Positions 30,214-54,600 of a stretch of DNA of 64,000 nucleotides are shown here, in pieces. The DNA lies in contig JAPDFW010000065.1 in the NCBI GenBank assembly GCA_028826165.1, positions 463,107 to 527,106 on the forward strand, given 5' to 3'. The notes under the pieces are model-generated. The model had not been told where the DNA came from, made no database searches, and saw only the letters and a list, made by a program, of their open reading frames with translations. The stretch's first letter is position 1. Each line of letters opens with the position of its first letter. The stretch comes from Anaeramoeba ignava BMAN. Taxonomy: Eukaryota; Protista; Anaeramoebae. A program made the translations under genes and the position numbers.

Positions 30214-33200
30214 TCATCTTTTTCTGAAAAGAATTCTTCTTTGATGAATATATTCTAATTCTTCTCTTTGTAACATAATTTGAATTGCTTTTCTAACTGC
30301 AAATTCTTTATTTCCTGATTGAACCAAAATTTCAATCATTTTCTTTTCAGGAAATGAAGAACCAATTGCTAATCTTCTTCTAATAGAGTTTTCTATTTGG
30401 TCAATTTGCTTAATCATTTTCTTAGTTAAAACACCTTCGCCAGACATATTTGTTGAATTTGCAGCATCCAAAGAAGAAACTTTGAAAATACGAACAGCTT
30501 CTTCAACATGAGATTCATTTGCAATTGGAGAAAGTGACATTTTAGCAAGAGCTTCAGCCATTCTAATTATCCCTTCAAGTTGGCGAACAGTAATCGGAAT
30601 AGCGCCGCTTTGTCCATATTGGTCTTTCATTTTGGCTTGAGAACGAATAGAGATGTAATGATTCTTTAGCAATTCGCTCGCTTTATTTGATAGTTTTGGA
30701 TAGCATGTTGATCTGCAGAAACTAATGTATCTTTTCAGAATTTTGGGATCAATTTCTGACTGTGGATCCTTTGTATTTTTGCTCATATGCATCCTTAGAA
30801 TATGCTTTGCAATGGCTTGATCTCTCTTTTCATTCTTGATATCTTTTATTATGAAGATCAAATCAAATCGAGAAAGAATACTCATTTGGAAATCAATATT
30901 TTCAAATGGTGATTTCAGATCATCATATCGACCAAAAACAGGGTTTGCTGCCGCTAAAACAGCTGTTCTTGCATTGAGAACGGCGGTTATTCCTGCCTTG
31001 GATATAGAGATTGTTTGCTGTTCCATTGGCTCATGAATTGCCACTCGATCATTTTCATTCATCTTGTCAAATTCATCAATGCAAACAACTCCATCATCAG
31101 CAAGAACCATTGCTCCTCCTTCAAGATAGAATTCTCGGCTTGTTGGATCTCTGTTCACTGATGCTGTTAGCCCAACTGCTGAATTGTGAACAAAAATCAT
31201 GTTGCTTAACATGAACGTCTCGTTTTCAACACTGAAATCATAAACTTGATTTTGCTTCTTTTTTTCCTTGTTTTTCTTCCTTTTAATTTCAACAACTTCA
31301 TCAAAATCAATCTCAAATCCATCTTTTTGATTTATTTCTTCTCCTTCTTCTTTTTCTTTTGAATCCAAATTTAAATTGTTCAAAATTCCACAAAATTTCA
31401 CAAAATCTTTTTTAATTATTTTGAGCCCATTTTCTTCAGTTTCATCATCAAAACTGTTTTTAGTTTTGATATCAAACCGAGAAAGAATTATTTGAATCTG
31501 ATTATGAAATATACTTGGTGTATTTTCTGTTGAAATGAAAAACTTCTTTTCTTGATTTGAATCATTAATAACAAAATTATTTGCTTGATACATTGAAGTG
31601 ATCAACCCTTCTAAAAATATTTTTTGACTTAGAATCAAATCTCCGTTGAGTTGAAATGGTTCCTTAATAATAGAATTCTTGAATAATTGGATTAAATTAT
31701 TATCAAATATATTGATTTGAAAAAATTTCTTATTGATTTGATTATTTTCAATAATTTGAATATTTTCGAGATTGAAATTGGAACTCAAAATATTTTTGAT
31801 TTTCTGAATGAAATGAATGTTTTTGTTTTTAAATATGAGCTTGGGCTGATTTTGTGAATAAAGTTTTTGAATAACTAAATTTTCAGAATCATTCAAAACA
31901 GTGGAAATAAATGAACCAATTAAATAACCAAAATCCTTATTCAAATTATAATTGAAAAATTGCTTTTTCGTTTTTTTAAACGGAATTTGTAATTTTTTCA
32001 GAATTGGAAGTAAAGTTCCAATTTGAATATCACTTCCTTTAATTGGCACAAGAATATTTTGTGCATTTTCTTGCTTTTTTTGTGTAAGTAATGAATGATC
32101 TTTTGTTACAACAAATTTTTTGCCTAATTTTGTTTTGATTTGCAATAATTCTTCTTTTGGTTGATGACGCAATACATAATGAACTTTTTTAAATTTAACT
32201 TGGTAATTTAATTGGTTAACTGCCAAAACTTTGAGGTTATCAAAGGGTTTAATTTGGATTGATTGATTTTGGTTTTTTTTGTTATTGTTAATATATTGGG
32301 AGTATTTTTTAATTTGTTCATCAATGATATTTCCTATTGAATCAAATTTTATTTTTCCATTTATTTTAACAATAACTGGTTCTTTATGATGAACTGAAGA
32401 TCCTTTTCCAGATGCATAAACACCAACAGGAGCAACAGCTTTTTTTTTTTTAAATTTAAATTTTGATTTTAATTTTAAATTTTGATTTTAATTTTAATTT
32501 TAATTTTAATTCTGATTTTAATTTTAATTTTGATTTTAATTTTAATTTTGATTTTGATTTTGATTTTGATTTTGATTTTGATTTTGATTTTGATTTTGAT
32601 TTTGATTTTAATATGAATTTTGATTTTAATTTTAAATTGAATTTTGATTTTAATTTTAAATTTTAATTTTGATTTTAATTTTAAATTTGATTTTAATTTT
32701 GATTTTAATTTTGAATTTTAATTTTGATTTTGATTTTAATTTTAAATTTGATTTTAAATTTTAATTTGAATTTTAAATTTTAATTTTAATTTTGATTTTA
32801 ATTTTAATTTTAATTTTGATTTTGATTTTGATTTTAATTTTAATTTTAATTTTGATTTTAATTTTAATTTTGATTTTAAATTGAATTTTTACCTTCAATA
32901 AATTTCAAAAACTGACTCTTTGATGTGGATGGATCTCCAAGTAATAAAACATTGATCTCACCTCTCAACCTCATTTTATCAAATAACTTTTTACGAACAC
33001 CACCAAATAACTGAATAGCTAAAGCCTTTTTGATATCAGAATAACCATAAATAGCAGGAGCAATACTTTTTGAAATAAAATCATAAACATTTGGTAATTT
33101 AGCAATTTGTCGAAATTTCTCCTCTTCTTCTTGGGTAAATTTGGAAGTTGTTCTTCCTTGACCTTCAAGATCTACTTCAATTCCAATAACTCTAATAAAA

Positions 33201-36390: not shown

Positions 36391-38041
36391 TCATAAAATC
36401 TTGCATTTCTTTTCATTCTTATCTTCTTTTTTTTTGGGAATCAATTTTAATGTAGTAAGCAATTTTGGATTTAGATGAAAATAATCAACACATTGAGATA
36501 ATTCATCATAAATTAAATTTCTTAAATCCTTTGGGATATCATCTGTATAAAAAAAATAAATCATTGCTCGAATAGTTTCTGTTTTAAAATGACTATAATC
36601 ATAAACAGAATTTGATTTGTCTTCATTTACAGCTAAAAACATTCCTCGATATAATTCACTTCTTATTATTAACATTATTTTATGAACTTTGATTCTTTCT
36701 TTATTTAAAATGATTTCAAAATCTTTACTTTCTTCATCATTCATTATTTTTTTAAAATCATTAATTAATCCTTCTGTTCCTATTCGAAAAGTTGTTTCAC
36801 AAACTTTGGAAAGTTTTTCTTTCAAATTTTTAAATATTGAATAATTTGAATTAATTTCAATTCTTCCAAAATAAATCCATTCTAATAAAATATCTATTTT
36901 TTTCTGTGATTTTTTTGATAAAAGTGGTTTTATTTTCTTTTGGAAAATATTATCATTTATATGTAATCTATTTTGAATAATAAATTTATGAATTGGAATT
37001 TTGATTTTTTGATTGTTTTCATCATAGCATTCAATTTCATCATCACAAAACTCTTTTCTTTCATAAAATTTTCTCAAATCTTCAATTATTGAACCAACAT
37101 CATAAAGTCTTTCAACAATTTCAATATTTTCAAATGAATAAATATTGCTAATAATATCATTTGCCATTTCAGTAAAAGATTCATCAATATTAATATTTTC
37201 TTTTGAAGAAACTTCGTAAAATTTTAATCCAAATTGATCAGCAAAATCTTGAGCTCTTTGTTTTGATATTTGTCTTTGATTTTCTAATTCACATTTTGTT
37301 CCAATTAAATATTTTATTGCTTTTTTAGGAAGTGATTTTTTATTTTCGAGTAATTCAAGAAGACTTCTAAATGAATTTTCATCAGTAATATCGTAACAAA
37401 TAAAAATTCCATCTATAATTCTTCTATGATCTTTTTTAATTTTAATTTTGATTTTAATTTTAATTTTAATTTTGATTTTAATTTTAATTTTAATTTTGAT
37501 TTTGATTTTGATTTTAATTTTAATTTTAATTTTGATTTTAATTTTAATTTTAATTTTGATTTTAATTTTAATTATGATTTTGATTTTGATTTTGATTTTG
37601 ATTTTAATTTTAATTTTAGTTTTAATTTTAATTTTAATTTTTATTTTGATTTTAATTTTAATTTTGATTTTGATTTTAATTTCTAAAAGAGAAAATACTT
37701 TTGATATGATCTTCAAAAGATACTAAATGAATTTAAATAAAATAGAATAAAAGAAAATAAAAAGAAAAGATTTCTTTTGTTAAAATTTTTTTTTAAAAAA
37801 ATTCTTTTCAACTTTTTAAAATTTAAACAAAAAAATATAACAAACAATTTCCAGGATGATCCAAAAAATCAATTTGATAATCTTCATTTTTAAATTGGAA
37901 ATATTTTTTTTGTGAAGGAGAATTACTTTCAAAAATTCCAGTATCATTAAAAATTCCAGTATAAATTCTTTCAATTAAACAAGTTTTCCCAACAAAATTA
38001 TTTCCAATAACAAAAATTTTAATATGTGGTTTGCTAATCAT
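36391..38041 (-). CDS. Rab/Ras-like GTPase + tandem BTB fusion with CAAX (CKIL), copy 1
   Basis: GNNFVGKT, DHPG, 24-nt microexon 37699-37722, ICYDIT, GTKCE, EVSSK; BTB FCD..IPIHKFII and KVHKIMLIIRSELYRGMF; ends KKCKIL*. Confidence 0.85.
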
Positions 38042-38210
38042 TTAAATTTATTAAAACTTGGAATAATGAATTTATTATTTAAAATTTCAAATAGTGAAAA
38101 AAAATGAAAAAAAATGAAAAAAAAATGAAAAAATTTTTTGATTTTTTATTTTGATTTTTTTTGAAAATAAATCAATTTTGTTTATAAATCAAACGATAAA
38201 ATTGAATATT

Positions 38211-39761
38211 TTAAAAAATAATGCAAGTTTTTTCATTTGAAGTTTCAATTTCTTTTTGGATTGGACTCAAACATTTTGGATTTAATTGAAAAAAATCAAC
38301 ACATTCAGATAATTCTTCATAAATTGTTTTGTTTAAACCTGTTTGGGATATCATCTGTATAAAAAAAATTAATCATTGCTCGAATAGTTTCTGTTTTAAA
38401 ATGACTATAATCATGAACAGAATTTGATTTATCTTCAGTTACAGATAAAAACATTCCTCGATATAATTCACTTCTTATTATTAACATTATTTTATGAACT
38501 TTGATTCTTTCTTTATTTGAAATGATTTCAAAATCTTTACTTTCTTCATCATTCATTATTTTTTTAAAATCATTAATTAATCCTTTTAATCCAATATCAA
38601 AAGTTGTTTGACAAACTTTGGAAAGTTTTTCTTTCAAATCTCTAAATGTTGAATAATTTGTCATACTTTGAGTTCTTCCTAAATAAACCCATTCTAATAA
38701 AGATTCTACATCTTTTTTATTATTTTGTGATAAAATTGGTTTTATTTTCTTTTGGAAAATATTATCATTTATATGTAATCTATTTTGAATAATAAATTTA
38801 TGAATTGGAATTTTGGTTTTTTTGTAATTTCCATCATAACATCCAATTTCATCATCACAAAATTCTTTTCTTTCATAAAATTTTCTCAAATCTTCAATTA
38901 TTGAAAAAGCATCTTTTTTTATATTTGATGTTGGATCAATTAAATCCCAATTATCCAAAATATCATTTGCCATTTGATTAAAAGATTCATCAACATTAAT
39001 ATTTTCTTTTGAAGAAACTTCGTAAAATTTTAATCCAAATTGATCAGCAAAATCTTGAGCTTTTTGTTTTGATATTTTTCTTTGATTTTCACATTCACAT
39101 TTTGTTCCAATTAAATATTTTATTGCAGCTGAATTTCCATTATTTTCAATTTCATCAAGGAAATCTTTAAGGAATTCAAATGAGTATTCATCAGTAATAT
39201 CATAACAAAGCATATAACCAGAAGTTCCTCTGTATAAAACTGCTAACACAATTCATATTTATTTTAATTTTAATTTTAATTTTAATTTTAATTTTAATTT
39301 TGATTTTAATTTTGATTTTGATTTTAATTTTAATTTTAATTTTAATTTTGATTTTAATTTTAATTTTAATTTTAATTTTAATTTTAATTTTAATTTTAAT
39401 TTTAATTTTAATTTTAATTTTAATTTTGATTTTAATTTTAATTTTTGAATTTAAAAGAAATGTACAAGTTCTACTTTGACGAAAACGATCTAAAAATAAA
39501 ATGGAAAAAAAATTATTAAGAAAAAAAGAATTTTTAAATCAAAAAAAAAAATATTTCAAACCCAAATAAGGATACCAAATTTGAAGTTTTATAGTTCGAT
39601 TTTGAATATAAATATTTTTTATTTTAAATTCAACTCCAATAGTAGACCCATAACTAGAATTATAAATTCCATCACAATATCTTGTAATCAAAAAGATTTT
39701 TCTTGATGAGAATGACCTATAAGTACAATTTAAAAAGAAAATCATATTCTGTATTTTGCAT
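38211..39761 (-). CDS. Rab1/8-like (pseudo)GTPase + tandem BTB fusion with CAAX (CIIF), copy 2
   Basis: MQNTEYDFLFK, STIGVEFK, KLQIW, 24-nt microexon 39466-39489, YRG, GTKCE, EVSSK, BTB cassette. After an indel near 38330 the frame ends EKTCIIF* at 38211. Confidence 0.8.
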
Positions 39762-40226: not shown

Positions 40227-42387
40227 TTAAAACTTCTCTGTAAAATTCAACCATTTGATCTGGAAGCTATAAATTTTAATTTTAATTTTAATTTTAATTT
40301 TAATTTTAATTTTGATTTTAATTTTTAGTTTTACCTTTTCAAACGTTTTTTTTGCAAAACCAACTGGTGAAAGATTTGGATGTGATTCATGAACTAAAAA
40401 ATTCAAAATATCTCTTTTGGGAATAATATTTTTAGCAGATTTTCTTAAATAACCATAATCTAAGTTAAGAATTGTTTTAAAAAAATCACGGTGATGATTT
40501 TTTCCATGTTCTTCAATAATTCTTTTTCCCATCTAATTTTTAAATAATTAAATAATTGAATTTTTGGATTTTTAAATAATTGAATTTTTGGATTTTTAAA
40601 TTTTTGAATTTTTACAAGAATAAAAATAATTGAAACTGGTAAATAAGACATCTCGTAAACTTTTCTTTGTAAAAGTTTTGCTTCTTCCATATTTCCTCTC
40701 AAAAAAATAACCAAAACATGATATTTAGAAGTATCTTTTGCAACTTTTGAAATATTATCTTTAATTTGTTGAATAAGTGGAACAATATTACGACATTCAA
40801 CTCTTTTAAATTTTGATTTTGATTTTGGATTTTGATTTAATTTTGATTTTCATTTGGATTTTGATTTAATTTTAATTTTAATATTGATTTTGATTTTGAT
40901 TTTAATTTTGATTTTAATTTACTGTTTGAATTTTTTGTTTGATAATAATTTCTCATATTCTGTCATAATTGTATCAACTCCAGAAATTCCAGGATTATCA
41001 GGATTTCCATTCAAAGGAAAACAATATTGATTTAAACGCTGAAATTTTCCACCAAAACCATAAGTAAAAATTGGAGTATCACCAAGCCAATTCTCAGACA
41101 TATAAAGACAATTTCGAATAGCATTCTGATAAATACTTCTTTCGTGTGTTTTTGGATTGATATAATGCAAAGATTTTTTCTTTCTCCTTCCTTTATTTGA
41201 ACTTGAAAAATCAATAGCAACATGCAAAGTGATTGAATGATCAGTTCGAAGTAAAGAATCAAAAGTGGGTTCATTCAAAATCATTGAGTTTAAGATATGT
41301 AATACACCCGAGTTCTGGTATTTCTTCTTGTTCTGGTTCTTTGGGTTAATGAGACTCAAATCAATTTTTGGATTTCGAATCAATTCTGAAAATAAAATTT
41401 CATTTTCACCAATAAAATCGGGCTTCCCTGATTTGTTCCAGTCATAGCACTCAATTCTAAGTGCCTCGGGCGGATCACCTCCGAGAAAAGAATGTATTCT
41501 GATCGAAACAGGCACCCAAACAGGATCTAGTGTTTTCATATAAGTTTCTGTTCGATGAACAGGAAACCAATCAGGATTATCAACTCCTTTTGAATAAAAA
41601 ACTAAATATGGATCACTTTTCCCGAAAACATCTTTTTTATCCAATTTACTCGCTGATATACTCATGTTTAATGACGCACCCTCGTTTTTTACATACCACC
41701 CTCGCACTGTGCAAATTGCTGGTGGTTCTTTTGAATATTCTTTTTTTTGCACTATTTGCTTTTTTAATGTCAAATCTGGTTTTTGGAAAATTTCATATAA
41801 TTTAAACTCAATTGACCCATAATAAACTTGTTCTGCTAGTGATTGTGAATCAGAATGAACACTATATACTTGAACAGTCATGCTTTGATTTTGTTCAATA
41901 TCAAAAATGATCTTTTTAAATTGGGGGAAAAAAAGCAAAAAAAAATTTTTTTTTATTTTTAGGGAATTTTTTTTTTAATTGAAATTTTTTGGAAAATTAA
42001 AATAAATCAATACTTGAAATCTTTTCATAAATTTTGGATTTGACATTTCTAAAAATTTGATCAAAAAAAAAAAATTTATTTTTTGAATACAATTTTACCA
42101 TTTTTAAAAATGTATAAAAATCAAAATAAAAATCAAAATGAAATTTGTTTTTTTTTTTTTTAATTTTTTTTAATTACTTTTGCATGATTCAGTTCTTCCA
42201 ATTTCTTCATTATTTTGAAAAAGAACAACCATTGGATTACTTTGACTAAAAAAGAAACAAAAATAATAAATTTTTAAATGATAAAATTTTAAATTAAAAA
42301 ATAATACTTTTTCTTTTCATTTTTTGTAATATTTTCACATGATATTGCAAGAACTATTAATTTTGCTGTTGAAATAAATTGATTCAT
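40227..42387 (-). CDS. Copine-like protein (C2-C2-vWA), multi-exon
   Basis: SKLDKKDVFGKSDPYL, KTLDPVW, CYDWNKSGKPDFIG, VAIDFSSSN, SLHYI, YGFGG, CFPLNGNPDNP; start MNQFIST at 42387. Confidence 0.85.
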
Positions 42388-42462: not shown

Positions 42463-42540
42463 TTTATTCTTCTTAATTTTCAAATAATCACAATCAAAAT
42501 AGATTTTAAGTGAAAATTTTCATTTATCAAGAAAAATAAT
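42463..42540 (-). promoter_or_regulatory. Eukaryotic type II SECIS element in the selenoprotein 3' UTR
   Basis: Minus strand: TTATTTTTCTTGAT-AA-ATGAA-AATTTTCAC-TT-AAA-ATC-TATTTT-GAT-T-GTGATTATT-TGAA-AATTAAGAAGAATAA, giving helix I, an AUGA/GA core, helix II, unpaired AAA 11 nt above the core and an apical mini-stem. Confidence 0.75.
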
Positions 42541-42584
42541 TTCTAAAAAAAAAATAATAAGAATGAATTTAATTATAATTATAA

Positions 42585-42989
42585 TTAAATTTTTCGTTCT
42601 CTTTCTTGAATATCTTCTAAAGTTGGTAATTTTTTTTCTTTAAAATAAGACCATAAATATTTTCCATTTCCAAGATGTACATCAAAAGTAGTTAATGGAT
42701 TAGCAGAAAAAGAATCAATAATAACTGAATATCCTTTTTTAGATAAATCATCTTTAATTCTTTTTGAAAGTCCATTTTGTCGTCATCCTTTTTATAATTG
42801 AAATATTAAATTGAAAAATTTTTTTAATTCAAATTTTTAATTGAAAAATTTTTTTTGAAATTTTTTTTTACCAGAAGTATAATGAATAAAAACATAAGGT
42901 TTTTTTGAATTTTCTGTTTCAGTTTTAATTGAAATTAGGAAAGAAAGAAAAATCAAAATGAATAATAAAAAATTTAAATTCTTTTTCAT
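42585..42989 (-). CDS. Rdx-family (SelW/SelT/SelH-like) selenoprotein with signal peptide, 106 aa, Sec at residue 41
   Basis: Exon 1 42872-42989 plus exon 2 42585-42787: MKKNLNFLLFILIFLSFLISIKTETENSKKPYVFIHYTSG-U-RQNGLSKRIKDDLSKKGYSVIIDSFSANPLTTFDVHLGNGKYLWSYFKEKKLPTLEDIQERERKI*. In-frame TGA at 42783-42785; Rdx-like FDV..GNG..LWS; downstream SECIS. Confidence 0.8.
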
Positions 42990-43261: not shown

Positions 43262-43831
43262 TTAATTGTCATTATCCAAAGGAACATAATCAATATTTTG
43301 TTCTCTTAATTGTTGTATAATTTCTGGTGGCAATCTTCCAGTTAAACGCATTGCATAACATCCAGGAATACGATCAACTTTTTTAATAAAAAAACGAAAA
43401 AAAACGAAAAAAAAGGTTTTAAGAAATTATTTTTTTGGAATAATTTTTAACATAAATAAAACAAGATACCAAATCCTTTCCATTTTGCAACCCAACTTTC
43501 CTGGGGATTAATTAATGCAATAAGTCTAAAAAACGGATAAAAAAAATGCATTTAAAATTTGTTTTTTAAAAAGGAAGAAAATTTTTGAAAATTAATTTTT
43601 AGAATAATAAGTTGATTTTTAATAAATAAGAAAAAATATCAACCCTTCAAATGAAGGTGTAGTGCATTCGTTTATGCCTTCTTTGTTATTTTTAAGGCTT
43701 AGAAATGGACAATTTTCACATCCATCTTGATTAAATTGTTCAAATGTTTTTACTAATCCGCACGATAAACAAGCTCGTGCAGTATGTGAATTAAGTGGTA
43801 CAATTGTTTTAACTCTTTCTTCTTGTTCCAT
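43262..43831 (-). CDS. SPT4: Transcription elongation factor SPT4, 3 exons
   Basis: RACLSCGLVKTFEQFNQDGCENC, CTTPSFEG, SWVAKW, PGCYAMRLTGRLP. Confidence 0.95.
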
Positions 43832-51668: not shown

Positions 51669-54600
51669 TTAATTTTGTTTCAGTTTATCTAAACAAAGAA
51701 GATAAACTGAAACAGAATATTTAAGTGTTAAATTTTGAGGAAAATGTTTTTGAATAGTTTCTGATTCTGTTTTAAGATTCAATAAATCTCCAATATTTAC
51801 TAAATTATTTAAAAGTTCTTGTTCTGGAGAATAATTTTTTTGAATTAATTCTTTTGAAAAGAAATTTTGGAAAATTAATATCAAATTTGTAATTGAAATT
51901 TTTTCAAAAAAGGAATCTAATTGATTTAAGAAAGTTGTTGGAATTTGATTTTTATATTGATTATCTAATTTATCCATAATTGATTCAAAATGCTGTGGAA
52001 TATTATTGTGAATAAATCTTAAATGTTGAATTTTAAGTTTTCTAATTGATTTAATATTTTCTAATTCAAATGGAATCATGTTTTCTTTTGCAAATTCAAT
52101 AAGTGTTTGATCAACTTTAATTAATTTTTCATCTTTTAAATTGGAACAAAATTGGATAATATTTTGATAAAATTTTTGGAAAATAGGAATAGCAAATTTT
52201 TCTAAAAGATCTTTAACTATTTCATCCCATGTATCTTGTGAAAGATTAATTTGTTTCCATCTTGATTCATCAAGGAATGAAGTATTTAAAATGATTTTAT
52301 CTTTAAATTGAAAATTATTGATAATAATTGAAATATTTTCAGTTTCAATAAATGTTTGAAAAACTTCACTCATCTTTTTTTCTAATTCATCAAAATTATC
52401 TTTTATATTATGAAATTTAATATAATCTTCTATTCTTTTCAAATTAAATTCAAAAGATGAATCAATCATTCTTCTAAATGGGTTATTTAATCCTGTTTGA
52501 AATGGGAAAGATATTTTTATTTCATCTTCATTTTGATTTTGATTTTGATTGAATAATTTTTGTATTTCATTCTTTAATCTTCTTTTTTCTTTCGAAATAT
52601 ATTTAATTAAATATCCAATATTTAGTTTTTTTTCTTGATTTGAAAGAATTTCTTTAATAAATGATTTTCTTGTTATTGGTTCAATTGTATCAATAATTTG
52701 TGGAATTTGATTGTTTTCTTGATCAAGTTCATTTAAATTATTTATATTGAATTTCTTGACTTTATCATTATTGATTTGACTTAATGAAATTATCCAACAT
52801 TCATTAAAATCATCTTCCCAATTTTCTAATATCTTAATTTCTTCTTCATTTAATTTTTCAATTTCTTTTTCTTTTGAATCTTTAAATAAATCTTCAATAT
52901 TAATTTTTTGTGATTGTTTTAAATTAATTTTCCCATTATATTTGATATTGATAAAACTTGAAAATTTGATAAATGATGGGAATAAATAAATCATTTTAAA
53001 TTTCAAATAATTTTGAATAAAAAATGAAATTAATGGATATTTTTGAATGTTATTTTCAATATTTTTTGGTTTTTTTAAGAAATTTGAAATTAAATTTGAA
53101 ATTGAAATTGGATTTGTTAATAATAAATTTGTTGCTTTAAATGGTTTTTTGAATGTTGAAATTTCAATTTTTGAAAGAATATTTTCATGTTTTTCTTTGT
53201 AAATTTTATATAAAGCTTCTTTCCAATTATCAATTTGTTTACTAAGTCTTCCAAGTTGAATTTGTTTATCTTGAACTTTGATAATTTCTTTTAAGAAAAG
53301 AATATAATAAATTTTTGTATTTGTTATTGATAAATTTAATATAATTGATAAACTTTTAATTTCATGATAAATTAATTTTTCATTTAAATTTTTTAAATTT
53401 GTTTCATTTGTTTCATTTTTTAATAATAAAAATAATAATGAATAATGAATAATTCTTGCAATTCTTGTTGGAATAATAAAATTAATACCAGATAAAGTAA
53501 AAATTGGATTTGGTTCTGGATAATTGTTAATTCCTAAAATATTTTCACAAATCATATTTCTGTTATTTGGGAAATTATTCATTTCATCATTAAATATTGG
53601 TAATGCAATATTTTTATTCATTAAATATTTTTCTGCTGTTTCTATAATAATAATTAGAACTTTTTCAAAATCTTCATTTATTGTTTCAATATCTCTGCAA
53701 ATTTTATAAACAGAATTCTTTATATTTTTTTGTTGATCTACAATTTTTTTATCATTTGTTAATTTAGAAGTAATCCAATTAAAAATTCTTGTTAAATCTT
53801 CTACTTGATTATTTAAAAAAGAAACAAAATATTCATAATAATATCCATCTGGATTTAATATCTTATTTTGTTCTTCATTTTCTTGAATATCCATTTTGAA
53901 AATTTTAACAAATTTCTTTTTAATTTGTTCTTTTTCTTGAATATTTTCCAAATGTTTTATTGTAAAAAAATCATATTCTTGAAATATTTGTTCTGAAATA
54001 TATTTTTGAATTTCTTCATTTTTAATTTTTGAATATTTGTTTGAATCTTGAATAATATAATGAATATTTAAAATAAAATTTTGATATTCTTCAAATAAAT
54101 CATTTATATGTTCAATTTCTGGAAAGAATCTTTTTTCATTGATAATAAATTTGTTTTGTTTTTTTGTTAAATCAAAATCATTTGTGTATTGGAAAAGAGT
54201 TAATAAAAATGTGAAACTCATACATTTTAAATCATTTTCTTTAAATGTAAAATAATCTTTTAAATAATTGAAAATATCTTTTCTTAAATTTTCATCTTTT
54301 TCTAATAATTTGAAAATATAACTAAATAATATTGAAAATAAATTTGGAAATTGAAATTCATTTTGATCTATTCCAAAAATTTCATTTTGATTTTGATTTC
54401 GATTTTGATTTTGATTTTGATTTTGATTTTGATTTTGAATTTGATTTTGATTTTGATTTTGATTTTGATTTTGATTTTGATTTTGATTTTGATTTTGATT
54501 TTGATTTTGATTTTGATTTTGATTTTGATTTTGATTTTGATTTTTGATTTTTGATTTTTGATTTTGATTTTGATTTTGATTTTGATTTTGATTTTGATTT

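Follow-up and report, generated by a model that had tools for sequence, protein, structure and literature searches.

Selenoproteins of the Rdx family (SELENOW and SelW-like proteins; PF10262, TIGR02174) are defined by a CxxU motif, and their chemistry is poorly understood. SELENOT keeps CxxU, is larger and presents an inserted hydrophobic region. The C-terminal consensus of Rdx proteins was reported as tGxFE[IV] (PMC10650576). An incomplete search of the literature revealed SelW variants only with CxxU or UxxU, and TxxU only for a prokaryotic peroxiredoxin and a complex I subunit.

Anaerobic metamonads were already known to possess selenocysteine (Sec) machinery: Sec use was described for Spironucleus, including SelW (PMC2874811), and for Preaxostyla (PMC10703272), and a tRNA-Sec was published for A. 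pumila (bioRxiv 10.64898/2026.04.11.717937). The Spironucleus selenoprotein W1 is also of the SelW type in an anaerobic metamonad, but no canonical SECIS was found for it (PMC2874811), whereas the SECIS elements of Anaeramoeba ignava are canonical. Host selenoproteins are not mentioned in the main text of the A. ignava genome paper (PMC11550330).

The A. ignava gene described here, hereafter the Sec41 gene, very probably encodes a Cys-free, presumably exported variant of Rdx/SelW, and not a new motif or system. It shares with SELENOW and SelW-like proteins the small size, the position of Sec right after strand beta-1, the F-[ED]-V strand, the N-G-x-x-L-x-S strand, a Pro before the last helix, a SECIS in the 3′ UTR and the intron of the CGGU paralogs, and differs from them by the lack of Cys at position -3 or elsewhere, by an N-terminal leader, by the motif TTFDV in place of GxFE[IV] and by scores under the family cut-offs. 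SELENOT is another Rdx protein with Sec, located in the secretory pathway (PMC10650576), with no specific similarity to the Sec41 gene shown. A signal peptide and a small thioredoxin-like domain with Sec are common to SELENOM and SELENOF (Sep15) (PMC10650576), whereas the Sec41 gene lacks a match to Sep15/SelM in Pfam, a signal for ER retention, a Cys-rich domain and any Cys. With the Sec-containing peroxiredoxins, which belong to a different family, only the Thr of TxxU is shared, and only by the Sec41 gene, since its closest paralog has Ile.

Gene structure and reading frame

All parts of the candidate selenoprotein gene were placed on the minus strand, and coordinates are those of the window, the whole 64-kb stretch of DNA that was analysed. 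The coding part of exon 1 (42989-42872, ATG at 42989) comprises 39 codons plus 1 nt and encodes a leader, a polar linker and strand beta-1, ending in H-Y-T-S-(G). It is followed by a predicted GT-AG intron of 84 nt (42871-42788) with 8% GC, whose sole AG is the terminal one. This intron lies in phase 1 in the Gly codon before the Sec codon, splitting Gly40 as G/GA, and the TGA comes directly next (42785-42783; predicted Sec41), in frame and at the position of the homologues' Sec/Cys. The coding part of exon 2 (203 nt, 42787-42585) encodes the helix, three strands and helix of a predicted Rdx-like domain, with 65 open codons between the TGA and the TAA at 42587-42585. The predicted product has 106 aa, with zero Cys anywhere in its sequence, as the preliminary description had proposed, and its mature domain spans about 85 residues, with Sec after strand beta-1. 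The gene does not overlap its neighbours, a Spt4-like gene (stop at 43262) and a copine-like gene (ATG at 42387).

TGA closes long ORFs in the window, such as a MCM5-like frame at 30214 and a Rab-BTB frame at 36391; therefore, UGA is not generally reassigned, in line with the earlier statement that TGA is a true stop elsewhere in the window. The positions previously assigned to exons, intron, TGA, 65-codon frame and SECIS were likewise all verified in the sequence. No annotated product was found for the Sec41 gene by a word search with exon 2 (sizes of 36-114 residues), and the annotation of its closest paralog, located on contig C143, places the junction past the UGA, so that the gene had indeed been missed by standard annotation.

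Two further features of the window were observed. The MCM5-like exon (30214-32226, minus strand) contains a long insert that resembles an intein with a homing-endonuclease region, ending in H-N-S. Rab-BTB genes lie downstream, and in the same orientation, of both Cys-free Rdx genes (window 36391-39249, minus strand; L016:3523-5244 at the C143 copy), which may be due to chance, given the great expansion of the Rab-BTB family.

The SECIS element

The preliminary description reported a canonical-looking SECIS about 45 nt past the stop, and its geometry bore this out. A type II SECIS was placed at 42539-42464, on the same strand as the gene, with a 14-bp helix I beginning 45 nt past the stop, an AUGA/GA core (AUGA at 42523, 3′ UGA at 42482), helix II, an apical AAA at 42507 that sits 11 nt above the core, and an apical mini-stem. 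The element lies within the 197 nt that separate the stop from the ATG of the next gene, 262 nt after the Sec codon, and its hairpin had a folding z of -3.64. A second SECIS-like pattern, 197 nt past the stop, was rejected as the start of the copine-like gene.

The Rfam SECIS_1 model gave this element only 21 bits, under the gathering score of 35, and for this reason a genome-specific model was built from six other A. ignava elements, those of four Rdx genes, a thioredoxin-reductase-like gene (end G-C-U-G) and the selenophosphate synthetase gene, leaving out both the 42539-42464 element and that of the C143 paralog. This model scored the element at 43.3 bits (E 2.5e-6 in the window, where the runner-up reached 21 bits), which also supports the earlier description. 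In the 42.8-Mb, 147-contig assembly, in which the window lies on contig C66, its E-value was 0.0015, and the nine matches comprised the six training elements, the 42539-42464 element, that of C143 and one behind a SelK-like C-terminus. The six training elements covaried strongly, with double changes in 24 of the 26 pairs and in none of 500 shuffles, a value that leans high as the structure was derived from the same six. Between the Sec41 gene and C143, the SECIS was conserved above the flanking UTR and helix I was retained, with three compatible changes, one of them double and two single, and helix II of the Sec41-gene element presented two U-U mismatches at positions that are paired in C143.

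The SelK-like C-terminus (Gly-rich, U then G-G-G-N-C; L045:1500-1800, minus strand, C15 about 53000-53300) adjoins the SelW gene of C15. The thioredoxin-reductase-like C-terminus G-C-U-G (L007:700-1571, on C2) has an animal-type ending, and its SECIS lies about 700 nt downstream, past a simple repeat.

Selenocysteine machinery in the genome

The A. ignava genome was found to contain a tRNA-Sec (70 bits, anticodon TCA), SepSecS (E 5e-120), eEFSec and selenophosphate synthetase (SPS). Among solved structures, the eEFSec on C24 matched human eEFSec best, with E 5e-31, other GTPases reaching 1e-5; a first eEFSec candidate (L017) was rejected as EF-1A. The SPS gene (L037; C64, about 1029000-1031640) starts with M-K-G-U-S-C, its in-frame TGA corresponding to Sec at residue 4, and has its own SECIS about 1 kb past the stop. 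These four components, with the TGA-containing SPS among them, supported the working Sec machinery that the preliminary description had implied, and the two others that it had named were recovered as candidates only. The PSTK candidate had an E-value of 1.6e-20 and scored far under the family cut-off, and the SBP2 candidate is an L7Ae protein matched at the L7Ae level only, whose exons presumably resemble those of SBP2.

Two side observations were made. Immediately upstream of the SBP2 candidate there is a frame that encodes a FANCM/Mph1-like helicase and an apparent intein (L036:3-3890), and an EF-1A copy scattered over several frames was found on C53 (L034:1956-3316, minus strand), probably owing to assembly frameshifts or to its being a pseudogene.

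These components, together with the SECIS and the TGA conserved in C143, sustain the earlier claim of a hidden selenoprotein, and the predicted, unannotated Sec-encoding gene is in all likelihood real.

Rdx/SelW ancestry

The CxxU/CxxC motif of Rdx/SelW is absent from the Sec41 gene, which has T-S-G-U where the C143 paralog has I-S-G-U, with zero Cys, and the Rdx/SelW family cut-offs (PF10262, TIGR02174) were not reached. Exon 2 had no match in Pfam or NCBIfam when searched alone, so that strand beta-1 is missing from the score, and the C143 piece reached 12.4 bits against an Rdx cut-off of 22.6 in an exon-wise search from which strand beta-1 is likewise absent. No match to the Sep15/SelM family of Pfam was found for the Sec41 gene or its paralogs, and the paralogs match Rdx.

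Homology to Rdx members was nevertheless detectable by several means. Exon 2 scored 7.9 bits with a profile built from 62 pieces of bacterial SelW (maxima of 4.5 among 569 window decoys and 7.4 among 1000 shuffles) and 18.6 bits with a profile of four A. ignava paralogs (maxima of 5.3 and 8.1, respectively). The alignment of profiles by hhalign to three Rdx-positive paralogs gave 92.7% and E 4e-7, and blastp of exon 2 to the C15 paralog gave E 1e-5. In terms of Atlas features, the clusters nearest to exon 2 were Rdx at 0.78, which serves as a lead only.

The region T-F-D-V-x-x-x-N-G-K-x-L-W-S (42689-42648) corresponds in the alignment to FEV-x-x-x-[DN]G-x-LI[YF]S, as found in the paralogs and in bacterial SelW. 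Compared with the consensus tGxFE[IV], its TTFDV retains Phe and Val, has lost Gly and has Asp for Glu. The Rdx-type motif FDVxxGNGxxLWS reported previously was overstated, the motif being degenerate and exon 2 having no Pfam hit.

AlphaFold predicted the order H-E-E-E-H for exon 2 in both six-row and two-row runs. For the six-row model, the top Foldseek rows were SelW-like (E about 0.5), VIA gave a Z of 4.3, tied with others, and the Atlas gave TM 0.67/0.73 to Rdx; all three matches to Rdx are partly circular, because the six-row alignment includes Rdx members. The two-row model kept the same helix-strand order, with no clear structural match. The origin in Rdx/SelW that had been proposed was thus upheld by the profile scores against decoys, by hhalign, by blastp and by an intron shared with paralogs, and the gene product is very probably a Rdx-derived, very divergent relative of SelW.

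Paralogs and family history

At least seven Rdx-like genes, each with a TGA and a SECIS, were found in the A. ignava genome. The gene on C71 (L011:1498-1906) is intronless and encodes a canonical SelW with C-L-V-U, a SECIS and 40-48% identity to bacterial SelW-like proteins. Those on C137 (L013) and C15 (L012/L015) are of a cytosolic type with C-G-G-U and repeat-filled introns, the former being annotated as M0811_03540 with the TGA skipped. The C-G-G-U of these A. ignava paralogs presumably recalls SELENOM. The C78 gene (L014:1326-2190, about 150640-151500, minus strand), from which the annotated model M0811_09024 removes the TGA by splicing, has a divergent E-L-G-U-C, with Sec beside Cys, and a SECIS. 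The gene on C1 (L117:1373-2088, about 510430-511147, minus strand) has three exons, a hydrophobic leader, C-G-G-U, the phase-1 intron, a second intron and a SECIS of 34.7 bits. The closest paralog of the Sec41 gene, on C143 (NCBI KAJ5066485.1, hypothetical protein M0811_13598), has a leader, I-S-G-U, the TGA and a SECIS.

Five Rdx genes (the Sec41 gene, C143, C137, C15 and C1) have the phase-1 intron that interrupts the Gly codon preceding Sec. As this intron fixes the register of the alignment to the C-G-G-U of C137, C15 and C1, Thr38 (codon ACT, 42878-42876) occupies the position of the CxxU Cys; the corresponding C143 codon is ATT (Ile). Exon 2 of C143 is 51% identical to that of the Sec41 gene, with the same exon lengths (exon 1 of 39 codons plus 1 nt, indel-free), TGA, frame and stop, and no indel or stop is present in the 106 codons of either copy, whereas the introns measure 84 and 120 nt in the Sec41 gene and C143, respectively, and the length of the 3′ spacer also differs.

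The helix-1 exon of C1 resembled the Cys-free pair (z of 4.1 and 4.7) more than the cytosolic C137 and C15 (z of 1.0 and 2.0), and a SelW piece can be recognised in its last exon. Between the leader and strand beta-1 of C1, near L117:1975, an A-run carries a frameshift of one base, which is either an assembly error or the mark of a broken gene. C1 is a plausible bridge between the cytosolic CGGU genes and the Cys-free leader pair, and its combination of leader, CGGU and intron suggests that the leader was gained before the Cys was lost. The likely history starts with a cytosolic CGGU gene with the phase-1 intron, followed by leader gain, Cys loss and duplication. In a tree of the post-Sec pieces, the Cys-free pair stood on a stem of 5.7 substitutions/site, in a placement that is not supported.

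A profile search of 1.84 billion representatives returned only the annotated C143 paralog and one repeat-rich chance match, and a six-row profile search only A. ignava proteins. Neither the JGI metagenomes nor a word search with exon 2, with look-up of the encoding contigs, yielded an outside homologue. This absence says little, because such genes are rarely annotated.

Leader and predicted destination

The Sec41 gene and C143 both encode a basic N-end and a 15-residue hydrophobic core, which in the former belong to a putative signal peptide or anchor (residues 1-21, 42989-42927), and the T-rich DNA of this genome readily encodes F/L/I. The Kyte-Doolittle mean was 3.11 over residues 7-21 of the Sec41 product and 2.83 for the C143 paralog. 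The leader makes it likely that the product enters the secretory pathway. The previous proposal of an ER or secreted selenoprotein stands as regards the hydrophobic leader and not as regards ER residence, as no KDEL-like C-terminal retention signal is present in the Sec41 gene product.

The symbiosome of A. ignava, a network of membranes that opens at the cell surface (PMC11550330), may possibly be a site at which the product acts. A more specific scenario, of an Anaeramoeba-specific, fast-diversifying exported Rdx subfamily, Cys-free and acting in an endomembrane or symbiosome lumen facing sulfate-reducing symbionts, with small thiols or sulfide recycling the selenol, is doubtful.

Proposed mechanism and alternative explanations

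In the proposed mechanism, splicing at the first AG would bring the UGA into frame, and the SECIS in the 3′ UTR would recruit an SBP2-like protein, eEFSec and Sec-tRNA, leading to the reading of UGA41 as Sec, a decoding suggested by the presence of these parts in the genome. The hydrophobic leader would route the protein to the secretory pathway. The mature domain contains no Cys, and therefore no intramolecular Se-S bond, as in the CxxU proteins, would be formed. Sec would attack a disulfide or an oxidised thiol, giving a mixed Se-S bond, from which an outside thiol, such as a small thiol, PDI or the CxxU-keeping secretory paralog, may free it. On the sequence evidence, a catalytic mono-selenol redox protein is moderately probable, and the whole account, of an exported SelW/Rdx-derived selenoprotein encoded by two exons and working by a mono-selenol cycle, is held with equally moderate confidence.

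The main alternative to the mono-selenol cycle is a lasting covalent trap: the gene would encode a real secretory selenoprotein without turnover, in which Sec stays bound to a partner through a lasting Se-S bond (retention or trapping), pairs up in a Se-Se dimer or binds a soft metal. The lack of a Cys available to resolve the adduct, the changes at two conserved residues of the Rdx motif, G and E, and the rapid protein divergence, consistent with a binding role, point in this direction, as does the binding of SELENOW to 14-3-3 via its Sec (PMC13437758). However, no partner protein was identified for such a trap, and redox enzymes with a single Cys or a single Sec that are recycled by outside thiols are common. 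Examples with a single Cys are the 1-Cys peroxiredoxins and the monothiol glutaredoxins. This alternative was considered unlikely.

A decaying pair of recent duplicates under relaxed selection, keeping TGA and SECIS by descent, was considered less likely still. The ratio dN/dS was 0.41 for the C137/C15 pair and, for the Cys-free pair, about 0.7 in exon 1 and about 1.1 in exon 2, a noisy estimate because GC3 is 0.02 and only about 42 synonymous sites are available; a ratio near 1 would fit relaxed or diversifying selection. Such a value at a dS of only about 0.3, the two helix II pairs lost in the Sec41-gene SECIS, the long branch of the pair in the tree, the frameshift of the related C1 gene in the assembly and the failure of the searches made to find an orthologue outside A. 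ignava would all agree with decay. On the other hand, the 106 codons of both copies are free of indels and stops while intron and UTR took indels, the SECIS is conserved beyond the flanking UTR with compatible changes, dS is underestimated at this GC3, and the long stem before the duplication implies a frame kept open over much divergence.

The preliminary description had read TxxU as a motif reminiscent of the peroxiredoxins, with Thr in place of the resolving Cys. Taken as functional, such a motif would have Thr activate the peroxide at Sec. Thr at position -3 in the Sec41 gene and the occurrence of TxxU in Sec-containing peroxiredoxins (PMC1088965) speak for this reading, and Thr would predate Ile if the codon had changed along TGT-AGT-ACT-ATT. 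Nonetheless, the reading fails because C143, with the same structure and a SECIS, has Ile at -3; C78 has Glu (E-L-G-U), and Thr is not fixed. Bacterial SelW-like loci had CxxU in all 62 that could be scored, in a sample biased by one peptide pattern. Exon 2 matched no peroxiredoxin family (AhpC/Redoxin) in Pfam, and the fold evidence favours Rdx over peroxiredoxin. The peroxiredoxin context consists of a PxxxTxxC loop and a catalytic Arg. As no peroxiredoxin family match was obtained, this context is absent, and no peroxiredoxin domain with a conserved Thr at -3 is found. A peroxiredoxin-like function of TxxU is very unlikely, and the feature common to the predicted products of the Sec41 gene and C143 is the absence of Cys, not the presence of Thr.

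Finally, the use of one of the in-frame downstream AGs (42752, 42734 or 42725) as the real acceptor, giving a Sec-free protein, is the least probable reading, for although the NCBI model of C143 (89 aa) splices beyond the TGA and such AGs are present in both genes, GenBank also skips the TGA in the plain CGGU gene C137 and in C78, which makes this a habit of the gene caller, the first AG met downstream of the donor is that at 42788, the 54 nt skipped are exon-like (26% GC; P 8e-5 under the intron composition of a genome with 80.65% A+T and introns with 91.86% A+T, PMC11550330), helix 1 would be deleted, and the SECIS would be purposeless.

Implications

The view that metamonads can use Sec, already published, is unchanged by the Sec41 gene. 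Members of the Rdx family are missed or wrongly spliced in the public A. ignava annotation: of at least seven genes, three were seen with UGA-skipping junctions. Moreover, the presence in one genome of a Cys-free pair and of a secretory sister that keeps CxxU provides a natural comparison for the role of the partner Cys, and the same comparison bears on whether a protein of the secretory pathway can manage with Sec alone.
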